Assembly: GCF_011386835.1 (NCBI RefSeq)
Contig: NC_088797.1
Span: 33,790,001-33,854,000 of the forward strand
Direction: 5' to 3'
DNA: 64,000 bases
Source: Chrysemys picta bellii
Taxonomy: Eukaryota
Of this stretch, positions 15,318-63,519 are shown one piece after another (within the stretch, counting starts at the first letter, position 1; the number at the start of each line of letters is the position of its first letter). The position numbers were made by a program, and so were the translations under genes. Below the pieces are notes generated by a model. That model had not been told where the DNA came from and did no database searches. It was given only the letters and a program-made list of their open reading frames with translations.

Positions 15318-18059
15318 TTACTGGGATGGGGGAGAGAATCCCGCACTGCTGCCTACCTGAGCCAGTGGAGGTAGCTTCCAAAGCCTCGCCTCTCTCCCCG
15401 TTTCTTTTGCCAGGGCACCAGCACGGCGTTCCTGCTGCAGCCAGTAGAGCATCTCCACTTTGTCCCACCGCATCTTCTCCAAATATGGGCGGCCCTTGAA
15501 AGTCACAGTGTCATGGAACCTCTCCTTGATCTGGGGCAGAATGATGTAGAGGTCAGTGTCGCACTGGGCGATCGCTGCATACAGGCGGCCTCTGGTCCTC
15601 GACTCCCAGGTGCGTGTGGCGAAAGACTCAAGGCTCCTTTCGAAGAAGCGGTTTGGGTCAGAGGCGGTTTGCTCAAACTTCTCCAGCTCTACCAGCAAAA
15701 GCTCCCGTTCCTGGATACTCTTTGCTGCTTTCTCCCAGGCTTTGAGCATAGCTGGCAGCTGAGCATAAGACTGGTTGGAGCTGTACTTAATCGCCATATC
15801 AAGCCTCTCCCTATCAGGGAAATGAAGAACTTCCCAGAGTCTCTCCAGTCGCTTCTGCAGCACTCTGAGGTCTTCAGGCTTACGGTCCTGGTCCTCAAAA
15901 GTCCCAAGCCCGCCAAGCATGATGGTGTTTGTGTTCCACATCCCAGGCATGTACTTCTCTCTCTTTGAGCGGACCTCTGCCACTTTCCGTTTTACCTCTC
16001 TCAGTGCTTCCTCCAACTGTTTCTTTTGGGCTTCATCTATGAAAAGTGGCTCCTCCCCCTCATTGTACAAATGAAATATCACATGCAGGTAATCAGACTC
16101 CTTGGTGGATACATATTTCAGGTAGTCATCGGCGTTGAGGGCAGATTTCCACCACTGATACCAAGTGGTTTTTTGTTTACGGGCAATCACGAGGGGCAAA
16201 CTTGATTGCACTGGTGTAGTGACTTTCTGGGTGCTGAACGGTCCAGTGGGCAGCAGCTTATTCAATTCTGTATTGATTACCTGCTCATTTTTCCTTTTGG
16301 TCAGCGTGGAGGAAGCCAAGCTGTTGGATAAGTCCACGTTCACAGCTGCAGGCTCTATCAAGGGTCCTTGGTCAAATCTCAGATACTCTGTGGGGATGAT
16401 TTTTATCAGTTCCTTGTAAATTTCCCGGATCTCTTCCCCAGCTGAAAGCTTTGCATCCAGGTAACTCACTGTAGCAGTATCAATCTCTCCCAGAAGATCA
16501 TTGTACAAGGGGCCGTATCTCTGAATTGCCACAGAGTCAACAAGTGCTCTGTCGGACACTTGTAGGTCAGCTGCCTTTGCTACCATGCCATGGTGTATTT
16601 GAAGATTCACCGTGGCACCTTGAGGGTGAGTGGGTGGTGCAAAAACTACCATATCTCTCAGCTGTTGCTCAGCCATCTCCTCTTCTTGGAGGCATCTAAG
16701 TGTCTCCTGAAGCTGCTGGAGTTTGGTTACATTGGCTCTGCGTCGTGTCAGTGCTCCAATGATGGGAGGCAGTTCTGCGTCCTCAATCTCATCTCTTCTG
16801 TTACCACTTCTGAGGAGGGAGCCTTGAACTAGCTTGCGAAGGTCCTCGGCTATGGCCATGGACTCTTCAAGATTGCCATCTGTTGCTGACTCAGCATAGT
16901 GACTGGGCACGATCGGTGTGAGGGGGCGAGGGGGAAGATGGATCCCAAGTTCATCTGAGAGGAGTTGCCCGGCTCTCATATTGGGCAATGAATGACTTTT
17001 TTTGGAAATGGAGCCAGCCTCATGCCTGACCCTCTTTGTGACTTCCTGATCTTCTGAAGCAGGGGTACAGGAGCAGGGGGTTCTCACTGCTACACATGGC
17101 AGGTTGGTAAAGCAACTGTCAAAAGTCTCTACATTAGGGATTAAGTGACAGACTCTGCTTAAATCCAGTGGGGGTATCTCCTCGAGTTCTTTGATATCCT
17201 TTGCGATTTTCTGCCTGCAGGTCTGCAGGTGGGGCCTGGTCAGTTTGATGAAGTGAGTCATGGTGAGGCCAAGGCGGCAGCCCACAGTGCTTCTGGCTGA
17301 GTGCCGGCCTCTCTGTGGTGGCCGTTTTCGCTCTGGCCGAACTGGCTTGCTGTCAAGAGAAAAGTGGTTCTGCGGGGTCTTCAGCTCTGCAATGAGATGG
17401 CGCTGGATGGCAGCCATATTGAGGAGACTGGAGCAGTCCAGAGAGAGCTGGGCTGCGAAGCGGGTGAGGTTGGCATAGTCAGTGAAGACAGCCATGCCCC
17501 GGTGGAGCTCCATCAGGCAGAGATAGTGGAAGAAGAGGTGTTCAGAGACAAGTGTGATGTATGCCACCAGATGCTGGTATAGGTCCTTGTTCTGCAAGCT
17601 GAGGAGGGCTGGGTTGGAGAGTGACTGACTGGCATCCTCCCAGGCGAATTTTACTTCTGCCAGGATGATCTCCTTGAAGACCTGTCCTGCCTGGCTGGAG
17701 ATGGGCAACGACTCCCTGCCCAAAGAAAGGCGCCCTTCAATCAACTGGGTCAGAGCAGCTAGGGAAACGGGGATACAGAATGCAGGCACTGGAGTCTTTG
17801 GGGAGCCAGATGGTAGCGTGTGGCTGGTCTCCGGGGTGCTGGGAGGCTCGGCAGAACTAGTCTCCTGTGTACCATGGAGCTGGGGGTTGGGTGGAGCCGG
17901 GGCTAGGGTGGGCTGTGAGGCTCCTGGGGGCCCCTTTGAAGGAGGCTGGAAGAGGGAGAGCGGGGCCAGGATGCCCTGGTAGACCTGGTGCAGCGTCTGG
18001 GTCACTTCCTCCGTCTCCTCCAAGGCATAGCGATCCCAGGAGGAGCCAGCGCGGGGCAT
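15318..18059 (-). CDS. CCDC87: Coiled-coil domain-containing protein 87, single coding exon, 913 aa
   Basis: Uninterrupted 2.7-kb ORF, first ATG at 18059-18057 (the ORF track starts at an upstream GTG). The C-terminus LERLWEVLHFPDRERLDMAIKYSS...KGRPYLEKMRWDKVEMLYWLQQERR matches my recollection of CCDC87. Intronless and head-to-head with CCS, as in mammals. Confidence 0.88.
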   Translation of the reverse strand: MPRAGSSWDRYALEETEEVTQTLHQVYQGILAPLSLFQPPSKGPPGASQPTLAPAPPNPQLHGTQETSSAEPPSTPETSHTLPSGSPKTPVPAFCIPVSLAALTQLIEGRLSLGRESLPISSQAGQVFKEIILAEVKFAWEDASQSLSNPALLSLQNKDLYQHLVAYITLVSEHLFFHYLCLMELHRGMAVFTDYANLTRFAAQLSLDCSSLLNMAAIQRHLIAELKTPQNHFSLDSKPVRPERKRPPQRGRHSARSTVGCRLGLTMTHFIKLTRPHLQTCRQKIAKDIKELEEIPPLDLSRVCHLIPNVETFDSCFTNLPCVAVRTPCSCTPASEDQEVTKRVRHEAGSISKKSHSLPNMRAGQLLSDELGIHLPPRPLTPIVPSHYAESATDGNLEESMAIAEDLRKLVQGSLLRSGNRRDEIEDAELPPIIGALTRRRANVTKLQQLQETLRCLQEEEMAEQQLRDMVVFAPPTHPQGATVNLQIHHGMVAKAADLQVSDRALVDSVAIQRYGPLYNDLLGEIDTATVSYLDAKLSAGEEIREIYKELIKIIPTEYLRFDQGPLIEPAAVNVDLSNSLASSTLTKRKNEQVINTELNKLLPTGPFSTQKVTTPVQSSLPLVIARKQKTTWYQWWKSALNADDYLKYVSTKESDYLHVIFHLYNEGEEPLFIDEAQKKQLEEALREVKRKVAEVRSKREKYMPGMWNTNTIMLGGLGTFEDQDRKPEDLRVLQKRLERLWEVLHFPDRERLDMAIKYSSNQSYAQLPAMLKAWEKAAKSIQERELLLVELEKFEQTASDPNRFFERSLESFATRTWESRTRGRLYAAIAQCDTDLYIILPQIKERFHDTVTFKGRPYLEKMRWDKVEMLYWLQQERRAGALAKETGREARLWKLPPLAQVGSSAGFSPPSQ

Positions 18060-18199
18060 GACGGACACGCCCGCTCAGGGGCCCAGAGAGGATTCTGACC
18101 CTCGGCCTCCCAGCAGCCTCTCGTTCCCGGCTCCCAGACCATGGGGGGAGGCAGGCCCCTGGGCTCACCACAACCCCCAGCCGCTGCGTCCTAATCCCG

Positions 18200-24730: not shown

Positions 24731-25699
24731 ATATTAATAATCACTAGTTCATATCTGCCACTCTGAACCAGCATATCACCAAGCACTTTACAAAGGGGTT
24801 TAGTATCATCTGCATTTTACATATGAGGAAACTGAAGCACAGGGGGGGGAAGTGATTTGCCCAAGGTCACCTAGCAGGCCAGTGGAAGAGCTGGGTTTAG
24901 AACCCAGGTTTCCCAAACTAGTGCTCTTTCTGCTAAGCCACATAAACAGATAGGACATTGTCCACAGAGGGCATTAGTCGCTGGAGTTACATAAGTATCT
25001 ACAGGAAACCTGCAAAGGTTTCTTTGAGCTCAGGATCGAAGTCTCTTGCTGCTCTGCTTGCCCCAGACTGTTTTGGGAAATCTGTCTGGCAGTAGCCAAG
25101 GTCGCAAGTGCTGTGGATTGCATGCACTGCAAAAGAGGAGAAAGTGCTGAGCTACCTATGCCTGACAAATGTTTCTAGAAAGCTGCAGCCTGAGCATAGG
25201 CAGCTAGACAGGAGGGTCTGGGTTAGGCTGTAGCCTGTTTTCCATTTAAAATCAGCTGTGGAGGCGAGATGACTTTAAGTATCTTTCATGTGCGCTGAAT
25301 CTGCCATTAAATAATATTTTCCTACTGTCACCCTGCTGTCTTGCTGCCCAAGCTGGTCACCTTGCATTGTGGTGGTGCCCAGACCTCAGGCACCTACTGT
25401 GCAAGATGCTGTATAAATGCAGAGGCACATCGTCTCTGGGATAGGTTCTGGGGCTGGGTGGCAGGTGCCTTGGAGGTGGGGGATTTGGGAAAGGGGGAAT
25501 CCCTAATCCCCCAGCAGGACAGTGGAGAGATCTCACTCACCCAGCTGGGGGGAGGGAGTAGTTCCCGTGACAGAAAAAGAACATGAGGCGGTCACTGGGT
25601 GTGGGCGGAGCCTGCCTATCACCGTGCCGGAGCCTGAGGGCGAAAGGGAGCACTCTGCACGTGGGTGGCGGGAGCACCATTTTGTTTACTGGCGAGTTA

Positions 25700-26131
25700 A
25701 CGCAAGGTCGGGCGTTGCGCATGTGCCCAGAGGCTCGGATAGGTGCATTCGTCACTGCGCAAGGGAAGGGAGGGAGATGCCGGAAATACGCAGGCGCGCT
25801 AGGGCTGGCGGCGCGGATTGTGACGGATGTAAAACAGGTTACAGGCGGTTGGGACTCAAGTGCGCAGGCGCAACGACGTTGCTAGGAGAAGAGCAGGGGC
25901 GCGGATGGAGAGGCAGGAGTGCGCAAGGCACTAGTAGTACGCAGGCGCGGCATTAGCCGAGTGTCTCTCTTCGCAGGCGCAGTTGCTCGTAGGTGGTGGC
26001 ATTCAGCGCGCTGCGCAGGCGTGTTGACGGCCGGGTGGTGCCTTCCTCTTTCCTTCCCATCTGAGCGTTCGGAGGGTCTGAGGTGCTGCCGCCATTTTGT
26101 CAGGCGTCCCGGTGCCAGCTCGGCCGCGGCC
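25700..26131 (+). promoter_or_regulatory. RBM14 CpG-island promoter/5'UTR with clustered NRF1-type motifs and a YY1 motif
   Basis: TGCGCAGGCGCA at 25861; CGCAGGCGC-like copies at 25789, 25940, 25972 and 26012; TGCGCATGTGC at 25716; CGCCATTTTG about 26090. Confidence 0.75.
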
Positions 26132-26477
26132 ATGCGTCCCGGAGTGAAGCTGTTCGTGGGGAACGTGCCCGAGGAGGCCACGGCCGAGGAGCTGGGCGAG
26201 CTGTTCACGGGCGCGGTGGGGCCGGTGCTCGGCGTGGCCCTCATGAAGCAGTTCGCCTTCGTGCACCTGCGGGATGAAGCGGCCGCTGTCCGCGCCATCG
26301 CCCAGCTCAACGGGCACCAGCTGCACGGCCGCCGCATCGTGGTGGAGCCGTCCCGCCCGCGGCCCACCAACACCTGCAAGATCTTCGTGGGTAATGTTTC
26401 GGCGGCCTGCACCAGTGGAGAGCTGCGGGCGCTCTTCCAGCAGTACGGGCCCGTGGTGGAGTGCGACGTGGTGAAAG
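26132..26477 (+). CDS. RBM14: RNA-binding protein 14 (CoAA), exon 1 (RRM1 and first half of RRM2)
   Basis: [76 protein letters not shown]; donor AAAG|gtaccg; 346 nt, phase 1. Confidence 0.95.
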
Positions 26478-27609
26478 GTACCGACCCCCCGGGTTCCCTA
26501 ATATCCCCCCCTTCCCCGGTACCGGCCCGTGGTGGAGTGTGACGTGGTGCCCCCTGGATTCTCCGCGCCCCCTCCCCCCCCGTACTGGCCCGTGGTGGAG
26601 TGCGACGTGGTGCCCCCTGGATTCCCCACCGCCTCCTCCTCCCCGTCTCCCCCCCCCCCCCCGGTACCGGCCCGTGGTGGAGTGCGACGTGGGGAAAGGT
26701 ACCGACCCACCGGGTTCCGCATCCCCCCTCCCCGGTACCGGCCCGTGGTGGAGTGTGGTGTCGTGAAAGGTATCAACCTCGGGACAGGGACCCCCTCCCC
26801 CTCTTCCTGATACCAGCTCATGGTGGAGTGTAACGTGGTTCCCTGCCCATGGTGGAGTGCGACATGGACCCCTCCCACCCTTGGTACCGGCTGGTAGTGG
26901 AGTGCGACGTGGTCAGAGACCGATCCCTGGGATATCGCTCTCCCTGGGACAGGGACTTTACACCCCTGCTGCCAGCCCATGATGGAGTGTGACATGGTGA
27001 AAGGTGCTGACCCCTGGGTTCTCTGACCCACCCCTGGTATCGGCCTGTGGTGGAGTACAACGTAGACAAAGGTAGTGACCTCCAGGATCCTCAAGTCCCC
27101 CACCCCTGGTACTAGCCTGAGGTGGAGTGCAACGTGGTAAAAGGAACCAACCCCTGATATCTCCCCTCCCACCCGCCCCCCCACTCCCACCCCCAGGATA
27201 GAGACTCTTCACTCACAGTACTGGCTCATGGTGGAGTGCAATGTGGTGAAAGATACTGACCTCTGGGTTCCATGACCACCTGGTACCGACCTGTGGTGAA
27301 AGGTTCCCTCTGCTGGGTTCCCCAGCCCCCCCTCCAAACTCTGGTACTAACCCATGGTGGAGTGCAGCATGGTGAAAGGTACCAACCCTGGGCTCATTTT
27401 TCCCCTCCTCCCCCACAGACCCATGGTGGAGTGTGATGCGGCCGGTGGTTCCCCGGCACTCCCCACCCTCAGTACAGGCCTGAGATAGAATGTGATGTGG
27501 GCAAAGATACCAACTCTCTTCTCCCCCATGGGGTAGGAATCCCTTCAACCAACCTCTCCCTGGGGCTAGAATCCCCTCTCCCCAGCAGTATGGGCCCATG
27601 AGTCATGAT

Positions 27610-27904
27610 TAAGGCTACGATTTAATCATGGGTATTTTTAGTAAAAGTCATGGACAGAAACAAAAAAATCATGGCCCATGGCCTGCCCGTGACTTATACC
27701 ATTAATACCCCAATTGAATCTTGGAAAGCCCGTGGCACCAGCTGCGGGGGAGGGGCACTACTGGTGATGGGGAGCCCTGGGGGCCAGCAGCTGCTCCAGG
27801 TGCCCTGGGACCGCTGCCCGAGCGGCTGGGTGCTGCAGAGGTTGCAGGAAGTCACGGAATCCGTGACTTCCGCCACCTCTGTGTGTGACAAACACGGAGC
27901 CCTA
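27610..27904. mobile_element. Non-autonomous hAT-type DNA transposon (MITE)
   Basis: Imperfect TIRs TAAGGCTACG... / ...CGGAGCCCTA; 8-bp target duplication GTCATGAT (27602) / ATCATGAT (27905). Confidence 0.75.
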
Positions 27905-27918
27905 ATCATGATGGAGTG

Positions 27919-29035
27919 TGTGATGGGATCTCTGGGGTGCAGCCTGGGACTGTGGGACCGCTGTGCCCCCTGAACTCTCCAGCCTGGGCTGTCTTTCACA
28001 ATACCTTGCTAGTGACCAGCAGTAAACCCCTCCAAGCACTGTTATCATTCAGCACAACTGCATGTGGAGCCCCACACCCTCCTAGATTGCATGAATGCTC
28101 CCAGAGCCACTCATGAATCACACAGGGAAAGGCACCAGCCCAATCCCCCCCCAGCTCCTAGCCTTGCACCCCAGGCACTGATCAAGATGATTTATTAATT
28201 GGTTCACCACTTCATCAATGGAAAGTGGATATACACCAGCCTTTGCAAAACATGAGCAGATTTGCCACACACTTCATACAAACTCACTGGTAAAGATAAA
28301 CAGTAAAACAAATGTATTGACAACAGAAGATTTTAAGTGACTATGAGTGTTAGGCAAAAAGTCAGAGATAGTTACCAAAAGTACATAAAATATAAGCACG
28401 CAGTCTAAACTCTCAACCCTATTAGACTGGGCAACATCTAGATTAAGCAGTTTTCTTCACTGCACTGGATATTGCAGTTCATAGTATACAGATTTCACAC
28501 TTGAAATCTGGGGCAGTCCCCTCAGTTGGAGTCTTCAGAGTGTCCTTGTTGCTTGCAGTGTAGGTGGGTGAAGGAGAAAGGCCCAGCATGGGGCCACTGT
28601 GTTCTGTTTTATTCCCTCAGTCCCATGTGCTTGGGGATCACAAGTCCAGGCATGTCTGGGGGCACTGCTAAGTCTCCAGCCAAGATTGAGCAATTCCCCT
28701 GGTATGGCCTCATGCAGGTGAGTCATTGAATTGTAGCTCCCTTGCTGGACAATGGTTGTAGATGGGACGTTTGGTTACTTTCCTTGCTGTTGCCTCTGGG
28801 GAGCTAATATCTGACCGATTCCCCAACTGACAGCATGTTTTAGTGACAACCATACAACACAATTCTCATAACTTCATATACATTAATGAGATACATATAT
28901 GGATAGAGAAATGACTTTCAGCAGATAACTTTTCCCCAGATACCTTTTAAGGCATGCTTTATATGTAAGATCACGGTTATATAAAAATGAGGAATATGGG
29001 GGTTACAGGATGCTCCCCCAAGGTATAGAATGTCC
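27919..29035. mobile_element. Probable solo LTR (about 1.1 kb)
   Basis: Starts with TG; flanked by 5-bp direct repeat GAGTG (27914-27918 and 29036-29040); no ORF; the interrupted array unit resumes right after it. The 3' end reads TGTCC rather than canonical CA. Confidence 0.7.
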
Positions 29036-32000
29036 GAGTGTAACAGTCGAAGATACCAATCCTCTCAGCGGAGCAGGGCCCACACCACACGACTAAGTCT
29101 AATATCTTCCTTCACCCTAGCAATTCCAGCCTGTGGTGGAGTGCCACATGGTTAAAGATACTGACCACTTGATTACGGGCAGACACCTCCTCCCTCCGTC
29201 TTTCCCTTTCTTCCCAGCAATATGGGCTTGTAGTGGGGTGCCATGTAGTCCAAGGTACCAACATCCTCATGAGGTGAAGCCCCCCCACCAATATCAATCC
29301 ACCAGTATGCATCTGTGAAGTCAGATGTTACCATAGGTACCAATTGCCCCACATTTTTCTTGGGACATATACTACCCCAACTCCTCCCTGCACCAGTGGG
29401 GGACTGTGGGGCCTCTTTGGCAAAGCAAGCCAACAGCAAAGCATGTAACATCAAAAGTACCAGTCTTCCCGTGGAGCAGGTATTGCCCCCAATCTCTCTG
29501 TCCTGCACTAGTGGGGAGTGGCAGAGGCTTTTTCAGCAACACGGGCCTGAGGTATAGAAATTGCCCCCTATCTGGGGGCAGAGACCCCTTCTAATCCTTC
29601 ATGAAGCAAATAATGCCCCCCAAATTCCCTGTCTTTGCACCAGTAGGGAGTTACTGGAGTTCTTTTGGCAGTATAAGTCCATAATGCAATGTGACCTAAA
29701 AGGTGCTGACTGCATCAGTCCTCACTCCCCATGGGGCAGATACTCTCCATAACCCCCTGCCCCCCATACACACACCAATGGAGAGATGAAGGGGTTGTTC
29801 CAGTTACTGTGGCGGAGTGCAACATCAACAAAGGTACTGACTGCTCCCAACCCCCCTTTCACGGAGCATTTACTTTCTTCCACCAGCAAGTGGGTAAACA
29901 TCCACTTTAAACTTCCTGGGGCAGATACTGCCTTAATCCATATTCTTCTGCCACAGTAAGGAGCTGTGTGAGGTCTCTTCCAGCAGTATGGATGCATGGA
30001 ATAGTACACTGACAAAGGTATTCACCCCATCCCACCTCACCTCTTCAAGGAGCACGCCCCGCCCTCAATTCAACCCCTATACCTGCTGGAGCTGTGAGGT
30101 CTCTTCAATTGGTACAGGCGGGTGATGAAGTGTGACATCAAAGGTGCCAACAGCATCTAACATCCCTCCAGTCCTTCACTGTGACAGTGCGGTCTTTGTG
30201 GGTGTGTGGAGGTGCTCTTCCAAGGGGAGAAGAATGCAGAAATAGGACACAACCATTGCAGCAGCCAGAAGGTTGAGGGGAAGAGTAAAGGAGCAGAGAT
30301 CTCACACAACCTGGTCACTGCCAGGAGAATCAGAGGGAGACATGGATAGAGGAAGGATAGCAACCAAAGGAGGAAATATGGGGTCATATTTTGGATGGTG
30401 GAGCCATCAGGCAGAGTTCAAGGGATAGTGGAAAGAACCCCAGCAGTTTCCTTTTATATCAGTCTGACCAATATGTTTACTCCTCTGGCTCTTTGGAGTC
30501 TGGTAACATTTTCAAGTGAACATGGGAGTGTATGGGCAGGAGAGATTAATGGGGTAAATTGGACAAGACAATAGTCTGAGGATTTAGGTTGCAGGGCAAG
30601 AGAGAAGGTCTAATAAAGCAGTAGAGGTGAGTAAATAGTATTCACAATTATTGTTCCAGCTTCACTGGAATTTGGCAGACTTTATAATCATTATAGTCAA
30701 CTGTTTGACTATGATCTGATGAATGCTGCTGAAATTCATTGAACAATATATCTGAAATTATCGGCTACTCCATCAGCTCCAGTAACATAATTATTACATA
30801 AAATGATTTAAGTTCTGGAGCTAAACATAACACACATAATTACTGTTGCTTTATACTGAAATATATATATTGCTTTATATTACTGTTGCTTTACGGTAGC
30901 ACAGGCATTTATCTCTAGCTGTTAGGCTTAGATGTAGGGTTAGTACCTGTCAGGTACATTTCCCTAAGCCTTAGATAATGCCCTCAAAGGTGGATATATT
31001 CTCATAAGTGCACCCTGCACCATCAGGCTGTTCATGAGCCTATTGTCAAATGCATCATTTCCAAGTTGCCAACACCTCTCTACTTGTCCTGGAATACTAG
31101 TGATGTGGGCCAGTGAGTGAGTGAGGTACTGTTGAAGCCAACCGCCCTACTTCTCCCCTGCATAAAAATTCCTTTTATATCCTGCGCCACTTGCTAATGT
31201 CCCGGAGCCGCCGTCATGTGTGACACTTATATGGGAACATTTAATGGACATCCCACCACCACCCCTTTCCCTTATGTAGGAGCTGTACATTGAGTGAGAT
31301 ACATTAGCGATGGTATCTCAGGGCCATAACCAATACTGCACGCTTTTCAGTTTCATGCCACCTTTGAATGCCTGCCTCATTCCTCAAATTACTTGTATAA
31401 TCAAAGGCAATTACTCTGCTCTCTGGGACACACAATCATGGAGCAGGGGTTGGTATTCCTTTCCCTTGCATCTGGAGAGCTGTTTCAAGTGATATGGACC
31501 TCCACCAAATGCAGTGTGTGTAACCATTTCTCCTTCACCAGTGTAAATGCCCCTTCCAGGCCCAGCCTCTGTGCCCATGCAGCTGTTCTTAAAAACAATA
31601 CCATAACAGCCAATCAACTACAGTTCTTTTGGGGCCCATATACACCTGTATCATCCCAGCACTTCTAGGGGATTGCACAACTTTGAAGGGCTGGCCAAAG
31701 CCCATAATCCAGGGTAATGAAAGGCAACAGACTTCCTTGCCTCAAGGGCTTGGGAGCAGCTCTATCCCCAGATCCTAGCAGGGGGGTAGCAGTAGCTTTC
31801 TGTGTTAGTGCTCTCTCTTCCCCCTTTCCTCTCATTTCCTTTTAGCTGTCCTTCTCTTTTGGTGCTATATTATTTTCCTTTATCACTTTTTTACTGCCTT
31901 TTTGTTTGTCTATTTGCAAAGAGCTCCATGCAGCCTCCCTTTCCTTTAAATATACACTTCGTGGCACAGGCAAATATCCCTTAATCGACCCCTTGCCTTC

Positions 32001-33534
32001 CTCAGAGGGGTTTAACTTCCTCTCACTTCCAGCATGGTGTCTTAGGAGAAAATAATTTTCCTAATCTAAATATTGTGGCTAAAAATGGCCCCCTCACCCA
32101 CATCAAATACCCCTAGCTTTTCATCCACTATATTCTAATATTCTGTGGCAGACTTCCCAGCTTCCTGACTGAACCAAATGATCCCAATGTACTCAGTCGT
32201 GTCTGCACATGAGCTGTATGTTCCTTCTGAATGTTATAAAGTTCTTCATCCAGGGCAAGGTGATGAAAGGCATAATTTCCAGGACCTAATATTAAATACA
32301 ACATGCTCTCTCCATATTGTGTGCTGCCTGTTGCTGCAGTTGGGTTACCCTTCTCTCCCCAGGGCCCAGCTCAGCTTTGCAGTGCCTGAGTATGCCTTGG
32401 ACTCATTTCAGAGTGTGGTGTTGTGGAACAATAACATCTCTAATTGCATAGTTATTTTCCCTTTCTATTGAGGTAAATAAGGCCTCTTACACATGGGTCC
32501 CAAGAAAAAACTCCAAGTGTCACCTGTTGTATGGGCTAGATTTGAGTGACCTAGACTCGCCGTTGATTGTGACCCGATTAACTGTAACCGACAGAACCTG
32601 TGTGTACTAGTGCCACTGGAGGCATGGCCTATTAGTTAACTTTTTCTTCACTGTAAATAATAATCCCTTCCCTGTGCTATGCCTTGCACAGCCTGATTTT
32701 GAGGATGGAGAGGGATCTCAATTTTGGTGTTGTCAGCTGCAGTTTTTCCCTTCAAAGGATCTTGCCAGCCCTTCTGCCCAAAGCTTTGGCCTAGGGCTTG
32801 ATGTTTTGGGCTCAGGCCTGAACCCAAGTCCCCCATTTAGCATGAGAACCCTTCGCTGTGACCCTCTGCATTTTCGTACTGATTTGCTAATACTGTTGCT
32901 GAATGTCTTATCCTCAAAGGTTGTGTAGCAATGTTGCTGCTTTTTCCTCTACCAATCATCACTTGAACTGACCAATTCAAGAGTATTCAGCCTGCCTTCT
33001 GTCATGCAATTTATATAATTTATGCCACATGCCAAATGTTCACCATATAGGAACTGACCAGCACAGATGCTCCCATATGCTTTGTTCATTGGGCAATAGG
33101 GAGCCCTTTCTCCAGGGTTCTAATGTGCTCAGAAAGTGCTGAGCTCTGGGGTCTGTTTTAATTCAGGAAGAGAATGAAAGAACCAAACCATAAATAGTGG
33201 TGATGGCTCTCCTGTAATTACTGGAGAAAGTGAATTCTGAGTGTTTCACCTGAATTACTTTAATGCCCTTATCTTCACTTGCAGGTGGTTGATAACAGTC
33301 GAGTATGGTGTAATCTGCACAGCCAACTCAAGTGTGTTGAGATGTTTGCTGACTTCTCGAGAGACTTTGAGAGATTTATTTTTCAATTTTTTTAGCTGCC
33401 TAGGTCTGAACAAGTCATTGTGATTCCTATAGCACTACTCTATTTGGACTAGATTACCAAGGGATGTGGGAAATTCTTCATCAGTTGGAGTCTCTATGTT
33501 GAAATTGTGTATGCCTCTTTTTCAGATACATTCT

Positions 33535-33670
33535 ATCTCTGCCCAAAACAGGCTGGATTCAGCAGTCACTGGGTGGAATTATCTTGCCCATGTTATGCAG
33601 GAGGTCAGAGTACATGATTATAATGGTCCCTTCTGGCCTTAAAATATACAAATTGAATCTATGAATCTAT
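33535..33670 (+). mobile_element. CR1 3' end with AATCTATG tail
   Basis: GTTATGCAGGAGGTCAGA..ATGATTATAATGGTCCCTTCTGGCCTTAA followed by GAATCTATGAATCTAT. Confidence 0.8.
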
Positions 33671-35009
33671 TTTCATAGACCTGACCATCACACATGAACA
33701 ACAGATTGTTATGCCCACTTACTGAAAGATTGCACCATAAAAGTATTGCTGAAAACTATTTTTCTAGTGCAGAGTCCTTGGGGCCGCCTGCTTCTATAGG
33801 CAGAAATCGGCTACAGCATTATTGGTGTGCAAAAAACACCAGCTTCTCACCATTCACCAAACATGAAGGGCAATAACAAGAGCAGGCAAGATCTCCACAA
33901 CTCCTTGAAGTATATAAGGCCTTGCTGAACTCAGGGGAAATCCCAAGGTTTCATTTGGCCCTGCTGGTAATAGCGGAAGGATGGTTGTAGGTACTTTTAA
34001 GAGAGCCTGTGAGGTATTGGTGCATCTGATGTGTTTGGACACCGGCAGATCTTGCTTGCCTATACAGTCGGATGTTTTTCTAGCACCATAGTTTGGATCA
34101 TTGGAAGCCAACCTTGCTGGTAGGGCCCTATTGGGCCAAGTGAGCCCTTGGGAAGGAGGGATGGGGTTTGGGGTACAGCATGGCTCCAACTCCTTCATTT
34201 CCAGATTAAATTTGGTATTTCCATTCTGTTTTGTTGGTTGAGAAAGATGGCCTATTTGTGAAGTAGGCCAGCAGAAGCCATGTTTGAACACTAAGAATCC
34301 TTACCATAGCACTTCTGAGTTCCTAAGCCTATAGAACTCCTGGAGAAGGGTGCCCACCAGGGATAGTGCAGCTTCCCATGTTGCTGGTCCCAAGTCAGTC
34401 CTTGCATACTGGGATTCAGTACATTGGAAAAGGCTCCCGTTGCTTCAGGGTCCCCAAAAAATGATCTTGTGATTTGTGCTCGGCATGCTAAGAATGTCCA
34501 GTCCATGAGCAGCCAGTTACTTTCTCCTCGTTCATTATAAAACGTTGGAGACTCTCCAGAGGCACATAAATTGAAATGACTTGCCACGGCCCTCAATATG
34601 GGAGTGGAGGAATAGCAGGGCCTGGATTCTGGATTGTAGCAGGGAAGTTGAGCAATGGGGCTTGTGTGGGCTGATTTTAATCCCTTGAGCTGTTAATTCC
34701 TATGGTGTCCTCTGCATGTGGGGTTGGCTCTATGTCCTTTAGAGTATAGGGATCTAAATTATGAAATATTGGATTAGACATTTGCTTTGTGTTCAGTAAA
34801 AGTCTAGTTTCTTGTAAGTGTATTTTTTCTAAACTGCTTTAGAATTACTGCTGTTGGAACATTCCCTAGCTCCTGTCGTGTCATAAATGTAATAGTCACT
34901 TCAAGTGTTTTGCTGGTATAGACTAAAATTATGCTTATAAGAATATATCATTCTAGATTTCTGTGTGTAAGATAGTTATCTGAGCCGCTGTAGCTTTGAA
35001 TTTGCTATA

Positions 35010-35206
35010 CAGACACCCCCTGACTTACGCAATCGTTCTGTTCTGGAAAGCCTTACACAAAATTTGAGTTATGCACGTTGGAAACGTATACCCATACATT
35101 ACGCAAAAATTTCCGCAACTCGAAAATCCTATTTCTGGCTTATGGAACTTTTTCCATAAGTGTGAATTTGCGTAATTTGGGTCTTGCGTAACCCAGGGAG
35201 CGTCTG
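35010..35206. mobile_element. Tc1/mariner-pogo (Tigger-like) MITE
   Basis: TIRs CAGACACCCCCTGACTTACGCAA / TTGCGTAACCCAGGGAGCGTCTG, flanked by TA on both sides. Confidence 0.8.
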
Positions 35207-36349
35207 TAGCTATTATGTTCAACCTGAGGTCCTGCCACAGACTAAAACACTTAATTGTTTTTAGAAAAAACTAAGGGTAACCATACAGTTTCTGTAAGTG
35301 AGAGGTGAAGATACCAAATTATTAATATATGTAGACTTTAAAATAACTCTTCCCTGCACTGCAAATGAAAATGTCAGTAGATTTGGTTGTCTAGTATGAT
35401 GCAGCACAGAAAATGTGCTTTTTTTTAAATTAAAAATAAGTTGAGAAACTAGAGGTAAATCCTTCTGAAATACTGAATTTTTCAATGTAATTGTAAAGCT
35501 TACCCATACCGAGTTTCAGGATTATTAAAGTCAGAATAGTCAAGAGGCTGCTACTTTTTTCTACTTATTTGGCTTTTTAAAATATAAAAGGTGCCCAGTC
35601 TCGGTTCTAGATGTTCTGACATACTTGATTTTCACAAATATTTAAATTGATTGCTCACTCCACTGACTAAATATATTTTATTAAAGATTCTTTTGTAGAT
35701 ATTAAATACAGTCCTCTTAACCCTGTTTAAGTTTGTATTCTACAGTGTAATACCTTTGACAAACTAGAGGGTTCCAAAGCAGATTAGTTTGGATGTTTTT
35801 TTGCAAGATTAGCATGAGCTGCTGGAAGAATCTCTAGTTTGTGGATGGCTAGTAATTTCCTTCCTGAAATTTCAAGAAAACTGTATTGGTTACATGTTCT
35901 TTAATGGTACAAAATGGACTAAAGTCAACTCTGGTATGACTCCATAAACTTCAATTTGGCTCTGTGTTCTCCGAACTGAATGAGACAATATTGTAGAATT
36001 TAAGATTTTGGGAACTATTTGTGGATATTTGAGGGTATTTGTAAACAAACCTACTGAGCACATGGATTTCTTTCTGTGCCTTGATTAGATACTTGTGGGT
36101 TTTCTCTACTTTTTTTTTTTTTTTTTTTTTTTTAGAATAGACTGCAGTTTTCATAATGTAGCAGCTATGGTAAATTGGGGTAATTTAGTTGCCAGCCCGC
36201 AGTTTATTAGGAAGGCTACAATACAGACTCTGTTTATACCCAAAGTGCATTTAAGTAATAGCAGAGAGATGCGTGCATCTGTTAAGTGTTCGATCCTGTA
36301 ATAAAATGTCTTGTCTTCTTCACTGATAACCCTCTGTCTACTTTATCAG

Positions 36350-37967
36350 ACTATGCATTTGTTCACATGGAGAAAGAAGCAGATGCAAAAGTTGCCATCG
36401 AAAATCTTAACGGAAAGGAAGTGAAAGGAAGAAGAGTCAATGTGGAACTCTCTACTAATGTTCAGAAAAAGGGGGCAGGACAAAATGCCCAGGCAGGCAT
36501 CAATGCTGACAAGAGCAAGAGAGCAAGTGTGGACTTTAGAGAGAAATATCAACCCAAGATCGACGGTTACGAGCAGCTTAGGCCTACAGACTCTACATAT
36601 CCATCAGTCTCTGCAGGATACACTGCATCCTCGCTCTACGATTATCAGCAGCGCTTCGGTGGCACCAACACTTCAAACAAATACAACTCCTTTGACACTC
36701 AGACAAGGCAAGCATCTCCCTCATATTTTGGAAGGGACAGAAGCCCAATTCGACGATCACCAACAAGAATCGGTTTTGCCACTGTGTCGCTACCCATGAC
36801 AGCACAACCAGCATCCTACAGAGCTCAGCCATCAACCTCACTGGGTGCAACCTACAGAGCCCAGCCCTCTGCATCTCTCGGAATGTCTTACAGACCCCAG
36901 CCAACAACGGGACAGGCAGCATCTTACAGGGCCCAGCCCTCGACCTCACTTGGAAATACTTACAGAACCCAGTCCTCTGTTTCACTAGGAGCTTCTAATA
37001 CCCAGCCTGCAGCCTCATCACTAAATTCCTACAGCGCTCAGGCTGCTGCTGCTTACAACACCCAGGCTGCAGCTTCCCAGTTAGCCTCTTATGGGGTCCA
37101 GTCCACAGCAACACTAGCATCATCCTATGGAGCTCAGCCTTCAGCCTCGCATGCAGCCTCTTATGGTACTCAGCCTGTGGCTGGTTACTCAGCCTCCTAT
37201 GGAGCTCAGCCAACAGCCACACATGCAGCCGCTGCCTATGCAGCTCAGTCTGCAGCTGGTCACACAGCCACCTATGGAGCCCAGCCTGTGGCCACACACG
37301 CAGCCGCCTATGGAGCCCAGCCTGCAGCCAGCCACTTGGCTTCTTATGGAGCCCAGCCTGTGGACAGCCACTCAACCTCTTATGGAGCCCAGCCTGCAGC
37401 TACTCTCTCAGCCTCATATGGAGCTCAGCCAGTGGCTGGCCATTCAGCCTCATATGGCGCCCAGCCTGCAACTGCTCTCGCAGCCTCGTATGGCGCCCAG
37501 CCTGTGGCCGGTCATTCAGCCTCGTATGGCGCCCAGCCTGTGGCCGGTCATTCAGCCTCGTATGGCGCCCAGCCTACAGCTGTGCTCTCAGCAACCTATG
37601 GCACCCAGCCTGCATCCACTCTGGCTGCATCTTATAGCAATCAGTCTGCAGCAGCTTCCTACAAATCACAGGTCTCTGCTCCACTGACCACACCCTATAG
37701 AACACAGTCTTCAAACTCAATGTCAGCTTCCTATACAGCACAGCAGCCCTCCTCTGTTCCCTTGGCAGTCACTTTCAGAGCTCAGCCTGTGACCGCATAT
37801 GATGGGCCAACCCAGCTTGGACAACAAGCAACCCCGTATTTGGGACTGTCTCAGTCTTCTGCTGCTGCTGCTGCCATCGCACCACCATACGAACGCACCC
37901 GCCTTTCTCCTCCACGGAGTGCTGGCTATGACGATCCTTTCAAAAAATCATCTGCTTTGGCTAAAAG
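36350..37967 (+). CDS. RBM14: RBM14 exon 2 (end of RRM2 and prion-like S/Y/A/Q-rich domain)
   Basis: ctttatcag|AC gives [36 protein letters not shown]; [11 protein letters not shown]; YGAQP repeats; [10 protein letters not shown]; donor AAAG|gtatgc after 37967; 1618 nt. Confidence 0.95.
37081..37630 (+). repeat. Coding 36-bp (12-aa) tandem repeat, about 15 units of SYGAQP-x6
   Basis: TATGG(A/C)GC(T/C)CAGCC recurs every 36 (once 39) bp; 37489-37524 and 37525-37560 are identical. Confidence 0.9.
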
Positions 37968-45429: not shown

Positions 45430-46770
45430 TAAGAACATCCCATGCACTAAGTACACCTAAGAACGGCCATACTGGGTCAAACCCATAGGTCTATTTAGCT
45501 TCGTATCCTATTTTCCAACAGTGATTGCCAATGCAGGTACTTCAGAAGGAATGAACAGAACAGGTAATCATCAAAGGATCCATCGCCTATTGCCCATTCC
45601 CAGCTTTTGGCAAATGGGGGCTAGGGACACCATCCCTGCCCATCCTGATTAATAGCCATTGATGGACCTCCTCCATGAACTTAGCTATTGTATATAGTCG
45701 TTCATAAGCTGAATATTTTTGGTAAAAAAGTGATGCATCAAAGAGTGGGGGTCGGCTTGTAAACGGGTCTACACCAAAATTTGATAATTTTTAACTCCAT
45801 GGAATCATTGAATTGAGTATCTAATACATTGTCTTTTGCTTACCTAGAGTGTCTGCAGGCATGGAGCCCCTCAGTTCCCTGTGGCCGCGGTTTGCCCTTC
45901 CCAGCCAATGGGAGCTGCAGGAAGTGGCATGCCTTGCCGCTCCCATTGGCTGGGAATGGCGAACTGCGGCCAAAGGGAGCTGAGGGGCTCATGCCTGCAG
46001 ATGCTCCAAATAAACAAAACGTCCCGATCCACCTGCGGCTTACCCTGACTGCAGGGAGCCAAAGTTTGCCAACCCCTGAAATATAGGGTCGTCTTATGAA
46101 AAGGTCATACAGTTTTTGCTATTTTTACCTAACCATCTCGGGGGTTCAGCTTATAAATGAACAAGTATATACGGTAGTTCTTTTTTGAATTCTGTTATAG
46201 TATTGGCCTTCACAACATCCTCTGGCAAAGAATTCCACGGGTTACCTGTGTAGTGTGTGAAGAAATACTTCCTTTTGTTTGTTTTAAACTTGCTGCCTAT
46301 TAATTTCATTTGGTGACCCCTAGTTCTTGTGTTTATAAGGAGTTAATAACACTTCCTTACTTTCTCCACACCAGTCATGATTTTATAGACCTCTATGATA
46401 TTCCCCCTTTAGTCGTCTCTTTTCCAAGCTGAAGAGTCCTAGTCGTTAATCTCGCATCATACAGAAGCTGTTCCATACCCCTAATCATTTTTGTTGCCCT
46501 TTTCTGTATTTTTTCCAATTCCAATATATCTTTTTTTGAGATGGGGCGACCAGGTCTGCTTGCAGTATTCAAGATGTGGGCGTACTATGGATTTATATAA
46601 TGGTAATATATTTTCTATCTTCTTATATATCCATTTCCTAATGATTCCCAACATTCTTGTTAGTTTTTTTTTTTTTTGACTGCCACTGCACATTGAGTGG
46701 ATGTTTTCAGAGAACTATCCACAGTGACTCCATGATCTCTTTCTTGAGTGGTAACCGCTAATTTAGACCG
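45430..46770 (-). mobile_element. 5'-truncated CR1 LINE (ORF2 C-terminal remnant and 3'UTR)
   Basis: Minus-strand peptide RMLGIIRK..IENILPLYKSIVRPHLEYC.Q.WSPHLKK (46481-46693) is a CR1 ORF2 signature; AAGAAC tail remnants near 45430-45465. Confidence 0.85.
45688..46174. mobile_element. Tc1/pogo-type MITE inserted into the CR1
   Basis: TIRs TTGTATATAGTCGTTCATAAGCTG / CAGCTTATAAATGAACAAGTATATACGG, TA on both sides; CR1 sequence resumes after 46176. Confidence 0.7.
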
Positions 46771-58430: not shown

Positions 58431-59143
58431 TCAAAACGCAGAGTACCGCGCCCTGTCCGCATACGACTCCCGCCCGAACCGCTGAACATCGTAGAGGGAG
58501 GCCCGAGCGACCGACGAGACTGGAGACAGCTGACAACGTTCATAACCGTACGCCTCTCCGACGGTGGTGGCCGCGGTTGCCGTGCGACGCAGGGGGCTTC
58601 TATCCCGGGTGTAATAGGTGGAGGATGCGGCTGCTGCAGCGGCAGTTGCAGCTGCAGCTACTGCTGCTGCTGCTGCTCCCGGGGTTGGCAGCAGCGCTCT
58701 ATCATAAGGGTCTAGGGTAGTAGTGAGGCGATTGGCCATGGCTGTGGTGGCGGCCATGGCTGTGGTGGCGGCCATGGCTGTGGTTTGTACTTGGGAGTAT
58801 TGCGCATACTGCGAATACTGGGCCATTGTTTGCTCTGCATAGGCGTCGTATGCAGATGCCGTAGCATAGGGCCTCACGCGATATCTTTTGTAGTAGTCGA
58901 CCATTGCTCCATACCCATCATCGTAATACATGGTCTCCCCATAGCCCGCGGGGTAGGGAGTGCGCACCGCTCCGTACTGCTCATTATAGGTTTCGGTAAA
59001 GTCAGGCACTTGCCCCGTGCGATCTACCGGACACTCTTTAGACCAGTGCCCTTCTTTCCCGCACCGATAGCAGCCACTCTTGTCTCCCATCCCGGGCGCG
59101 GTCCTGAGCCGACTGGTGGACAACTGCACGTGCATCCGCTTGC
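58431..59143 (-). CDS. RBM4: RBM4 family copy B (RBM4B-like position), second coding exon: CCHC zinc knuckle, Ala-rich region, RS dipeptides
   Basis: ctgtttcttaaag|GC gives [39 protein letters not shown]...RDRSPLRR...[10 protein letters not shown]-stop; 713 nt, phase 1. The RRM exon was not found in 59144-64000. Confidence 0.95.
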
Positions 59144-62005: not shown

Positions 62006-63519
62006 GGCAGCCCTGAAAGCTGAAGTAACATCTATAAAATAGGTCTGGCACTACCGGTGCCCACACAATGTGCCAGCATCCCCACCCAGCCAAAATGTCT
62101 TAATCCTGACCTGGAGGGCCACTTTGAAGGGGGTGGGGGGGTGGGGGGGTTCCATCCTCCATGGCCAGTTCAATCTTTGGACTTTCAGGGTTTATGAAAG
62201 GTGCACACCTGTTCAACAGGAACTGGGCTGGGACCCACCAGCTTATTTAATGGGAATTATGGAAGTGCTATGAGTAGGCTTGGAGGAATTTAATTTTTAA
62301 TCAGAAAACCTCTATTTCACTGTACATACACTAACCAGTGGAAAAAATATTTCCATCGATAATTAAAATTTACAGATAGGCAACATAAGAAAAATGTGTT
62401 TTCCCCTATAATGCAGTAAAAATTTTTGGCTCCCGAGGACAGCGTTATATCGGGGTAGAGGTGTAACTATTGTCTGACCCTCCCTCCCCTAATTTCACAC
62501 AACTGTGAACATTTAAAGCATTTTTTTAGATTTTTTGTTAATTTAAAATAATACTAGCCACCAAAATATTATAAAAATAAAATTCTGCCAAGCCTAGCTT
62601 TGGGGTGTTAACAGCTTTTGGTCACTGAGCCTGGGACAGAAGAATTAGTGGCAAGGTGCAAAACACCCTTTGTTTCATAGTCTGAATATAATCAATGAGA
62701 GAGTTCTATTTCTGCTTGTCACTAGAAAATGGAAACCAAATGTCTTAGCCACTTACGGTGCAGAGAAGTTTATTAGTAGAAACACGAAACAAGCACTCAT
62801 GCATTAATAGCAGCCCTGCTACAAGCTTCAAATGGCTAATCTCCCTAAAATCCCATTAATTTCTATGTAGGCCATATGGGTATATGCAATGCAGTGTTTT
62901 AGACCCAAGACAGTCAGGCCTCCAGGCACACACCCTTTCTTTTACAGGGCTGCCTAAAGATACACCTGGCTGCTGCTTCTAAGAGAAGACAAATATTCTG
63001 TTCTAAACAGAAGAGCAGCTGTTTCTTTACTAAAGATTATGTCTACAAACCCTTAACAGGTTAACTTTTGGGATGAGGTGTTGAGAGATGCAGCATCACT
63101 TTCAATGGTTGTACCAGACATGCCCGTTAGCTGAGGTAGAGCTTCACAGCCTAACTCCCAAGACTAGATAGGGCGTACCCATTGTAGGACCCAAAGATCT
63201 GTGCACAGGTGTAACATGACAGTCTACAAATCCACTTGCTTTCCACATTGCACTAACAGATGGCTTTGTACTGCTGGAGCAGAGACAGCTCATGCAACCA
63301 AAACATTGGGAATGACAAAAATTGCACATCTGTTTTGTTGCCACTGCTCAGTGTTGATAAATTGAAAGTATTCCCTGCTATGTGCATTAATTTGAACGCT
63401 TACTGAGTTCCTAAATTAGCTGGATCAACTCTAAGAGATCTGGGCACCACTCTGGGCAAGTCAATGGAAACCAGTGTGCAGGAGCAAAGTGCTAAGGTAC
63501 GTAAGGGATGGGATGGAGA

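Follow-up and report, generated by a model that had tools for sequence, protein, structure and literature searches.

A Tandem Array of Exon-End Copies in Intron 1 of Turtle RBM14, Probably an Old Minisatellite

The RBM14 Locus and Its Intronic Repeat Array

The window analyzed here is a 64,000-nucleotide stretch of the Chrysemys picta bellii genome that contains RBM14. The coding part of exon 1 (26132–26477, + strand) opens with an ATG at 26132 and ends at 26477 in phase 1, and its translated open reading frame (MRPGVKLF...ECDVVK) comprises RRM1 and the first half of RRM2. The true donor, AAG|GTACCG at 26475–26483 (+ strand), reads AAAG|GTACCGACCC in its longer context and is weak, agreeing with the U1 consensus CAG|GTAAGT at 5 of 9 positions and lacking a G at +5. 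Weak donors of the AAG|GTAYC type are also found in Chelonia, alligator, Rhea, quail, and a gecko-like squamate. A snake "RBM14-like" locus was set aside as not comparable because it lacks a GT at the junction. Exon 2 (36350–37959, + strand), entered through the acceptor cag|ACTATG at 36349/36350, encodes the rest of RRM2 and the YGAQP-type repeats, and translates to the same sequence as Chrysemys picta bellii RBM14.

Read-through of the true donor meets an in-frame TGA at 26540–26542 (+ strand; ORF 25919–26542), giving a 136-aa product, and our ORF check agrees on both points with a preliminary description of this locus. As that description also held, any downstream donor would give a premature stop: the TGA at 26540 lies in frame and upstream of all pseudo-donors, so it would enter the mRNA with any alternative junction. 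A CpG island (25750–26750; CpG observed/expected 0.7–1.1) spans exon 1 and the first four repeat units, and the ratio past 26750 is about 0.2.

Intron 1 had been described as holding about 25 tandem copies of the exon-1 end and its 5' splice site, and our hand count of 25 units, of which c16 is split by an insertion, confirms this. A search with nhmmer using the exon end as the query returned 21–24 further matches (E values of 1e-13 to 0.4), all on the + strand within intron 1, where they form two blocks at 26511–27600 and 29105–30152; over the 64 kb, the only matches outside intron 1 were homologous RBM4-like exons on the minus strand. The units lie head to tail on the same strand at a spacing of 29–184 nt, and the TRF rows in the array have periods of 63, 72, and 82. 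Individual units align around the junction from up to −78 to +22, including both the exon end and the intron start, with the last ~35–78 nt of exon 1 as the template. The proposal that the copies are self-derived from the exon-1 end and donor stands. No RNA family in Rfam matched over 25500–36500.

The proximal block (c01 to the first half of c16; 26511–27605, + strand) has a spacing of 29–106 nt (median ~70) and C-rich spacers, among them the C14 run at 26649–26662 that had been correctly pointed out. AG|GT is intact at 26698, 26769, 27003, 27071, 27302, and 27378; elsewhere in this block it is lost through an 11-nt deletion (c01 and c02), deletion of the GT (c07), a T>A change (c10), or a G>A change (c11 and c15). 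The best copy, c03 (26664–26718, + strand), has 52 of 55 positions in common with the exon/intron junction, and its donor at 26698 equals the true donor over AAAG|GTACCGACCC, an identity with the motif at 26477 that the preliminary description had rightly recorded.

The distal, older block (second half of c16 and c17–c25; 29036–30155, + strand) is more widely spaced (82–184 nt). Its units carry up to ~75 nt of exon sequence at 68–79% identity to the exon, and AG|GT is intact at 29254, 29336 (as TAG|GT), 29702, 29833, 30017, and 30143. Four distal units have a 3'-splice-site-like YAG 34–37 nt upstream. All 11 AG|GT sites listed previously, from 26698 to 30143, are correct; the TAG|GT at 29336 and an AAA|GT at 29456 are further GT-bearing sites outside that list. 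The sequence that splits c16 (27606–29035) is an interspersed-repeat (transposon) insertion and not part of the array. It is collinear in the Chelonia mydas locus and is thus common to both species, its depth in whole-genome run X15 is 10^3–10^4 times single copy, and many loose contig ends fall at its edges (27605–27610 and 29034).

Could the assembly have collapsed the repeat or expanded it falsely? High GC content and a C14 run mark the region, and short-read contigs break at 26649–26660 and at 27164–27210. Breaks within 26546–26694 leave the contigs of different runs without a common basis for counting copies there, and copy number is least certain in the first ~250 nt. However, independent whole-genome DNA contigs from the same species show 0–1 differences per contig across the array at single-copy depth, and unit order is the same in a relative diverged by ~1–2% and in the Chelonia mydas assembly. 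We regard an artefact as extremely improbable.

Decay and Conservation of the Copied Donors

We compared the fate of the donor dinucleotide with that of other positions in the units. Across 17 alignable units, the fraction of copies that retain the base is 0.76 for G+1 and 0.88 for T+2, against a mean of 0.80 for non-CpG columns and 0.52 for CpG columns. G+1 and T+2 are no better preserved among the copies than other non-CpG columns, while CpG columns decay. Even when non-CpG sites alone are counted, units farther from the exon are less identical to it (rho −0.56, p = 0.013). The relative diverged by ~1–2% carries a G>A change at 29254, which is position −1 of a pseudo-donor.

Donor-like motifs are not concentrated in the array. 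Scored with a hand-entered donor matrix, GT sites equal to or better than the true donor reach a density of 6.2–7.4 per kb in the array; the corresponding figures are 6.5 per kb for the remaining intron and 5.4 per kb for the transposon. By U1-match count, which is independent of the matrix, all 12 AG|GT pseudo-donors are weak, with 4–5 of 9 matches and no G at +5. Much stronger donor-like sites lie outside the array, for example GAG|GTGAGT at 30626. Poly(A) hexamers were looked for in the array and none is present, so there is nothing local for U1 to protect, and the suggestion that the array suppresses premature polyadenylation loses its footing.

The array is orthologous in the independent assembly of Chelonia mydas, which places it in two turtle families. 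From c04 onward the units match one to one, and the two turtles differ in unit number and by large indels only within the first ~250 nt of the intron, the remainder being orthologous. In this region, the Chelonia TRF array consists of 72-nt units in 3.4 copies, starting 34 nt inside exon 1, and these units have the donor AAA|GT. Identity between the window and Chelonia is lowest in the proximal array, at 0.862, whereas the distal array (0.920) evolves at the same rate as the remaining intron (0.921).

The preliminary description had proposed to ask whether GT positions are more conserved than their flanks across turtle genomes. Pseudo-donor cores (−3 to +6) instead change at the background rate: 11 of 54 core positions differ from Chelonia against 270 of 1147 in the background (p = 0.74), and 5 of 54 against 119 of 1044 in a second comparison (p = 0.83). 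Four of the 12 AG|GT sites of the window are lost in Chelonia. These selection tests cover 12–17 sites, so that weak selection on site number could escape them. Chelonia mydas has the orthologous c03 donor, AAG|GTACCG, in intact form together with 35 nt of exon context.

Among the lineages compared, relics of the array are found only in turtles and alligator. Alligator RBM14 intron 1 contains degenerate copies, although a spacer-only profile of the turtle units gave nothing significant against it, and no copies were found in our search of three birds and the gecko-like squamate. This limitation to slowly evolving lineages fits neutral decay. The units also carry a marker of relative age. At position −5, 9 of 10 distal units have C or T, reflecting the ancestral GTC valine codon, whereas G stands in six proximal units and in the turtle exon (now GTG); C is the base in the exons of alligator, Rhea, quail, and the gecko-like squamate. 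The difference between the distal and the proximal units at this position indicates that copies were made both before and after the synonymous change in the exon.

Donor Use in Turtle RNA

We searched RNA contigs and annotated isoforms for junctions at the pseudo-donors. The one spliced contig, from run X5, spans 25977–26477 and stops exactly at 26477, using the true donor. Contigs from the RNA-like runs X1, X5, and X9 are unspliced through each pseudo-donor that they cover; these runs are not plain genomic DNA, since their transposon-to-unique depth ratio is ~100-fold below that of whole-genome run X15. No pseudo-donor junction was present in the contigs or the annotated isoforms, contigs being of a kind that misses minor or NMD-sensitive junctions, and among the loose contig ends listed over 25950–30400 none lies at a pseudo-donor. 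The reading VVK|DYAFVHME is common to all eight full-length isoforms among the 15 cluster members, which come from seven turtle species, and short turtle isoforms with placeable extra exons also proceed from the true donor.

Contigs of intron 1 including the array come from many RNA-like runs, spread over two studies or more; they give no library type, strand, or level. These intronic contigs are compatible with intron detention.

An unproductive isoform of a different kind is annotated in sea turtles. Dermochelys isoform X7 includes a poison cassette exon in RBM14 intron 1, with a Chelonia orthologue at L002:13466–13561, that lies ~5 kb into the intron, shifts the exon-2 frame, and is unrelated to the array. 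The acceptor AG of this exon is missing from the window. The tail of Caretta isoform X2 is encoded neither in the window nor in the Chelonia locus L002.

Origin of the Array and Comparison with Known Systems

Given that the copied donors change as neutral DNA would and that no use of them was observed, we read the array as most likely an old, junction-anchored minisatellite and neither a selected splicing device nor a set of regulatory decoys. The preliminary description had offered neutral repeat expansion as a fallback, and decay, motif density, the orthologue, and usage all favor it. A founding unit, made of the last ~35–78 nt of exon 1 and the first ~40–55 nt of intron 1, would have undergone tandem duplication where the RBM14 CpG island ends downstream, presumably through slippage during replication, unequal exchange, or gene conversion in DNA rich in C tracts. 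More copies would have been added over a long period, with renewal next to the exon. The older units farther downstream decay at the neutral rate and lose CpGs outside the island. The transposon inserted into the array, which tolerates this 1.4-kb element and many indels. The pseudo-donors would be by-products of copying an already weak donor, kept or lost at random. The first donor is favored in splicing, and the spliceosome would take the authentic one as the first downstream of the cap.

The main proposal of the preliminary description was a self-derived, U1-binding array of decoy or poison donors. If selected, such an array might bind U1 or form decoy mini-exons (CTCTTCCAG|CAG...AAAG|GT, ~34–37 nt), thereby holding intron 1 or diverting transcripts to the stop and tuning RBM14 dosage; its function would lie in the number of sites, sustained by unit birth at the exon side. 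Consistent with this are the exon-derived context of the 12 AG|GT sites, the YAG upstream of four distal units, the intron-containing contigs across many RNA-like runs, and the persistence of the array in two turtle families and, in degenerate form, in alligator. Quail intron minisatellites, which are unrelated, likewise carry AAG|GTG in each unit. However, the sites decay at the background rate, an outcome that the preliminary description had itself named as refuting, with one third lost between families, and the whole array evolves as fast as or faster than the remaining intron. Donor-like motifs show no excess in an array of uniformly weak pseudo-donors that is interrupted by a transposon, copies went undetected in three birds and a squamate, and no use of a pseudo-donor was seen. 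Moreover, the annotated unproductive sea-turtle isoform relies on a poison cassette exon of the conventional kind at another place in the intron, and a human CoAA minigene from which most of intron 1 is missing is still spliced and still undergoes isoform switching (PMC1874587). We therefore judge a selected decoy array improbable. Very doubtful is a self-renewing reservoir of weak U1 sites or 34–37-nt decoy mini-exons dating to the turtle–crocodilian common ancestor, in which units would be disposable, their number upheld from a selectively frozen exon end, and intron 1 detained or diverted to the TGA at 26540 to buffer RBM14 dose.

Pseudo-donors, foremost c03 at 26698, might also be used at a low level without regulatory purpose, the resulting transcripts with the TGA at 26540 being NMD-cleared noise that is neutral or slightly harmful. 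The match of c03 to the true donor in motif and in 52 of 55 nt of context would allow this, and the youngest units beside the exon have disabled donors (the 11-nt deletion in c01 and c02 of the window; AAA|GT in Chelonia), as would fit selection against strong competitors. The −1 G>A change is, in addition, recurrent in three units or lineages. Yet the contigs and annotated isoforms hold no such junction, donor cores overall change neither faster nor slower than background, and c03 is intact in both families, so we consider low-level use unlikely. Three observations weigh against the neutral minisatellite itself: the long renewal and the likeness to alligator, since an array under selection and kept up by turnover would have much the same appearance; the persistence in both turtle families of c03, a perfect donor copy with 35 nt of exon context; and the presence of intron 1 with the array in many RNA-like runs, which is compatible with what intron detention would give.

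Polar GC-rich minisatellites of the Jeffreys type are unstable arrays with G/C tracts, such as CEB1. The RBM14 array shares with them its head-to-tail, GC-rich units of tens of bases, change at one end, and degenerate older units, but its end unit is a protein-coding exon end fixed by selection. De Grassi and Ciccarelli (2009, Genome Biol, PMC2812944) reported internal tandem repeats at exon–intron boundaries; their cases are recent primate events in segmental duplications, and several give rise to new introns or to alternative transcripts. In those cases, as here, the unit spans the exon–intron junction, splice motifs are multiplied, and copy number varies between related genomes; unlike them, the RBM14 array is ancient, mostly decayed, in a single-copy gene, and without sign of altered splicing.

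The Rous sarcoma virus negative regulator of splicing and the P-element pseudo-5' sites are further examples of splicing decoys. Decoy exons and splice sites promote intron retention (Parra et al. 2018, RNA, PMC6097662; 2020, PMC7373989). RBM14 resembles these systems in its nonproductive 5'-splice-site-like motifs, long intron, RNA-binding-protein product, and premature stop upon use; in contrast, known decoys are single and conserved and need their splice sites for activity, whereas the RBM14 sites are many, weak, conserved at background level, and not seen in use. The closer likeness to poison cassette exons of RNA-binding-protein genes belongs to the sea-turtle exon, which is separate from the array. 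For RBM14 itself, the isoforms CoAA, CoAM, and CoAR arise from three exons with alternative exons 2 and 3 (Yang et al. 2007, NAR, PMC1874587). Turtle RBM14 is the same gene with the same exon-1 donor, and that work describes neither an intron-1 pseudo-donor isoform nor an intron-1 repeat array; we found no description of such an array in the literature searched.

If the regulatory reading were true, this gene for a paraspeckle and condensate protein would provide a new decoy-splice-site regulator built by repeat turnover and not by site conservation. Under neutrality, the locus would illustrate repeat turnover beside a CpG island followed by neutral decay over roughly 100 million years at least. 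Because one unit is the conserved exon end, the array can then be read as a dated fossil series of that exon, recording its synonymous GTC>GTG change. For splice-site predictors and annotators it is a caution, because 12 of its sites resemble donors and sit in real exon context, and one of these is identical to the true site.

The exon-end array in RBM14 intron 1

The coding part of RBM14 exon 1 runs on the forward strand from the ATG at 26132 to 26477, ends with ...ECDVVK plus one base, and is followed by the donor AAAG|GTACCGACCC. Exon 2 starts at 36350 on the same strand, preceded by ctttatcag; its translation is identical to Chrysemys picta bellii RBM14 over 536 residues and differs from the Trachemys protein at 2 residues. 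The true donor, AAG|GTACCG (26475-26483), is weak, matching CAG|GTAAGT at 5 of 9 positions, and as judged from sequence comparison this weakness is conserved over a very long time. Reading through it reaches an in-frame TGA at 26540-26542, with an ORF of 136 aa, as the preliminary description had predicted.

We searched the 64 kb with a query spanning the last 90 nt of exon 1 and 23 nt of the intron (26390-26502), followed by a profile built from the first matches. These searches returned 21-24 further matches (E 1e-13 to 0.4), all on the plus strand and all within intron 1, in blocks at 26511-27600 and 29105-30152. Elsewhere in the 64 kb, only the homologous minus-strand RBM4-like exons match. 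The ~25 tandem copies of the exon-1 end and donor that had been read in the intron are borne out by a manual count of 25 units (c01-c25); each of the 11 AG|GT positions reported with them is correct, and the C14 run lies at 26649-26662. GT is also kept at 29336 (TAG|GT) and 29456 (AAA|GT). Units are spaced ~70 nt apart in the proximal block (c01 to the first half of c16) and ~120 nt apart in the distal block (second half of c16 to c25), where up to 75 nt of exon-derived sequence is kept.

A high-copy interspersed repeat (27606-29035) is inserted into unit c16, as shown by its sequencing depth in a whole-genome run, thousands of times that of single-copy DNA, and by many loose ends at its borders. 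This repeat is composite and common to Chelonia within the array, and ~190-220 nt of it (27628-27847) are missing from many of its genomic copies. The reference bases at 27006 (G) and 27209 (T) read A and C in the same-species whole-genome DNA run X15, the RNA-like run X1, and the close relative sampled by run X9; counted from the pseudo-donor at 27003, position 27006 is +3, where Chelonia likewise has A.

Decay of the copied donors

In a paralogue comparison, 17 units could be aligned; 0.76 of them retain G+1 and 0.88 retain T+2, against a mean of 0.80 for non-CpG columns and just 0.52 for CpG columns. The donor losses are varied, comprising an 11-nt deletion in c01 and c02, deletion of the GT in c07, T>A in c10, and G>A in c11, c15, c16, and c17. 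On a simple frequency matrix, GT sites that match or exceed the true donor occur 6.2-7.4 times per kb within the array, compared with 6.5 per kb across the other 6 kb of intron and 5.4 per kb inside the transposon, and the strongest pseudo-sites lie outside the array. The array thus duplicates exon context, not unusual U1 complementarity.

The Chelonia mydas locus, reached via protein searches, is collinear with the window across exon 1, the array, the transposon, and the remaining intron, with one-to-one orthology of units from c04 onward. With gaps excluded, the distal block (identity 0.920) is on a par with the remaining intron (0.921), and the proximal block is at 0.862. Taking units with AG|GT in either species and defining the donor core as −3 to +6, we found differences at 11/54 proximal core positions versus 270/1147 in the background (Fisher p = 0.74) and at 5/54 distal core positions versus 119/1044 (p = 0.83). 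AG|GT is present in both species in 8 units and in the window only in 4, the Chelonia losses being G>T in c04, G>A in c08, and G>A at −1 in c23 and c24. Run X9, from a relative 1-2% diverged, carries G>A at 29254, the −1 position of another pseudo-donor. The GT positions decay at the neutral rate, the outcome set beforehand as refuting the proposal that the array serves as decoy donors.

History and distribution of the units

A CpG island (~25750-26750) covers only units c01-c04 of the array, with a CpG o/e of 0.2 further on. This accounts in part for the fall in identity to the exon with distance, a fall that is also seen when non-CpG sites are taken alone (rho −0.56, p = 0.013). Over the initial ~250 nt of intron, the window and Chelonia disagree in unit number and structure, and Chelonia has a 72-nt unit repeated 3.4 times in an array that starts inside exon 1, indicating that recent turnover adjoins the exon.

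Both turtle exons end their last Val codon in G (position −5), a base shared with six proximal units; C or T stands there instead in 9/10 distal units (e.g., 29048, 29250, 29829, and 30139) and in c07, c09, and c15. The alligator, Rhea, quail, and gecko-like exons have C, pointing to an ancestral GTC Val codon that is now GTG in the turtle exon. The ancestral base in the distal units suggests that these are fossils of older exon sequence, and the occurrence of both states among units implies copying before and after the synonymous change. The interleaving of C-type and G-type units at 26900-27500 means that new units did not always join next to the exon.

At the Alligator mississippiensis RBM14 locus, the turtle profile found one copy at 8558-8582 (E = 5e-5, 19/24 core matches), a second at 8212 (19/24 core matches), and ~10 weaker matches on the same strand at 8047-8956, with none elsewhere in 9.9 kb; three matches were observed versus a mean of 0.25 in mononucleotide shuffles. 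A search of alligator with the turtle spacer profile found nothing, and in quail, a further bird, Rhea, and a gecko-like squamate only the exon itself matched, with no copies. The array may have arisen once, in the turtle-crocodilian ancestor, or twice independently. Relics are detectable in the two slowly evolving lineages alone, as neutral decay predicts.

In alligator the reverse holds, with GTG GTC in the two clearest copies and GTC GTC in the present-day exon. Exon-1 donors of the type AAG|GTAYCN, lacking the +5 G, are common to turtles, alligator, birds, and a squamate (loci L001, L002, L003, L005, L008, and L009). Quail RBM14 intron 1 (L003:1025-2224) contains unrelated minisatellites from 240 nt past the donor (31 nt × 4.7 and 144 nt × 7), every unit of which includes AAG|GTG (TAAAG|GTGTCG or ATAAG|GTGMTT); the resemblance may be coincidental or convergent, or the units may be a diverged remnant of the array seen in turtles. 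Four "RBM14-like" proteins are found in Crotalus adamanteus, and rattlesnakes carry several short RBM14-like genes. The Crotalus tigris junction is AAAG|GAGTGG, and because it lacks GT this locus may be a retrocopy or pseudogene.

Splicing of intron 1 and origin of the array

RNA evidence came from Logan contigs over 25950-30400, from which level, strand, and minor junctions are not readable. A 537-nt contig of RNA-like run X5 covers 25977-26477, breaks off precisely at the true donor, and then carries 35 nt foreign to 25950-30400, indicating that X5 is RNA and that splicing takes place from the true donor. Every pseudo-donor covered by contigs of X1 (26649-27639), X5 (26765-27164, 27210-27655, and 28897-30400 and beyond), and X9 is read through unspliced. 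The intron, including the array, is present in many RNA-like runs of two studies, so unspliced or intron-retaining RNA is common enough to assemble, which, for contigs, is no proof of detention and leaves room for rare use of the pseudo-donors.

The annotation points the same way: among 15 cluster members, 8 full-length RBM14 isoforms from 7 turtle species contain VVK|DYAFVHME, and short turtle isoforms join the true donor to other exons. Chrysemys isoforms X1 and X2 (139 and 148 aa) join exon 1 directly to an exon at 46540-46638 (plus strand, 100% match), skipping exon 2 and retaining RRM1 and half of RRM2. Dermochelys isoform X7 includes an annotated intron 1 cassette exon (window 31426-31527; L002:13466-13561 in Chelonia) followed by exon 2 in a shifted frame, which makes it a conventional poison exon in sea turtles. 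Chelonia keeps CAG|GAG...ATGG|GTAACC at this exon. In the window, TGG replaces the acceptor AG and 1 nt is deleted, so the exon is probably not usable there.

The array is probably a minisatellite of long standing, anchored where exon 1 meets the intron, with units that would be renewed beside the exon and pseudo-donors that would be neutral by-products of unit copying. Low-level, non-adaptive cryptic splicing from the pseudo-donors is an unlikely description of what the array does. A decoy array under selection and maintained by turnover is quite improbable. What stands from the preliminary description is the observation of a real, accurately described array; the selected decoy function is not supported. 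Mis-assembly, in which the copies would be an artefact, is very hard to reconcile with same-species DNA contigs that match the array with 0-1 differences each. Tandem repeats that span exon-intron boundaries have been described as a class (PMC2812944), as have decoy splice sites (PMC6097662); the literature searched contained no description of an exon-end and donor array at RBM14.

RBM14 has RBM4-like neighbours on both sides, all on the minus strand (7583-8098, 58431-59162, and ~63242-63290). At 7583-8098 a single exon codes for both RRM1 and RRM2, with no counterpart of the RBM14 intron at the homologous K|D position. A 916-aa single-exon ORF lies at 15318-18068 (minus strand), and two ORFs occupy 9317-11101 on the plus strand. 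Upstream of RBM14, the alligator locus carries a DDE_Tnp_4 gene and a Sod_Cu/HMA (CCS-like) gene.
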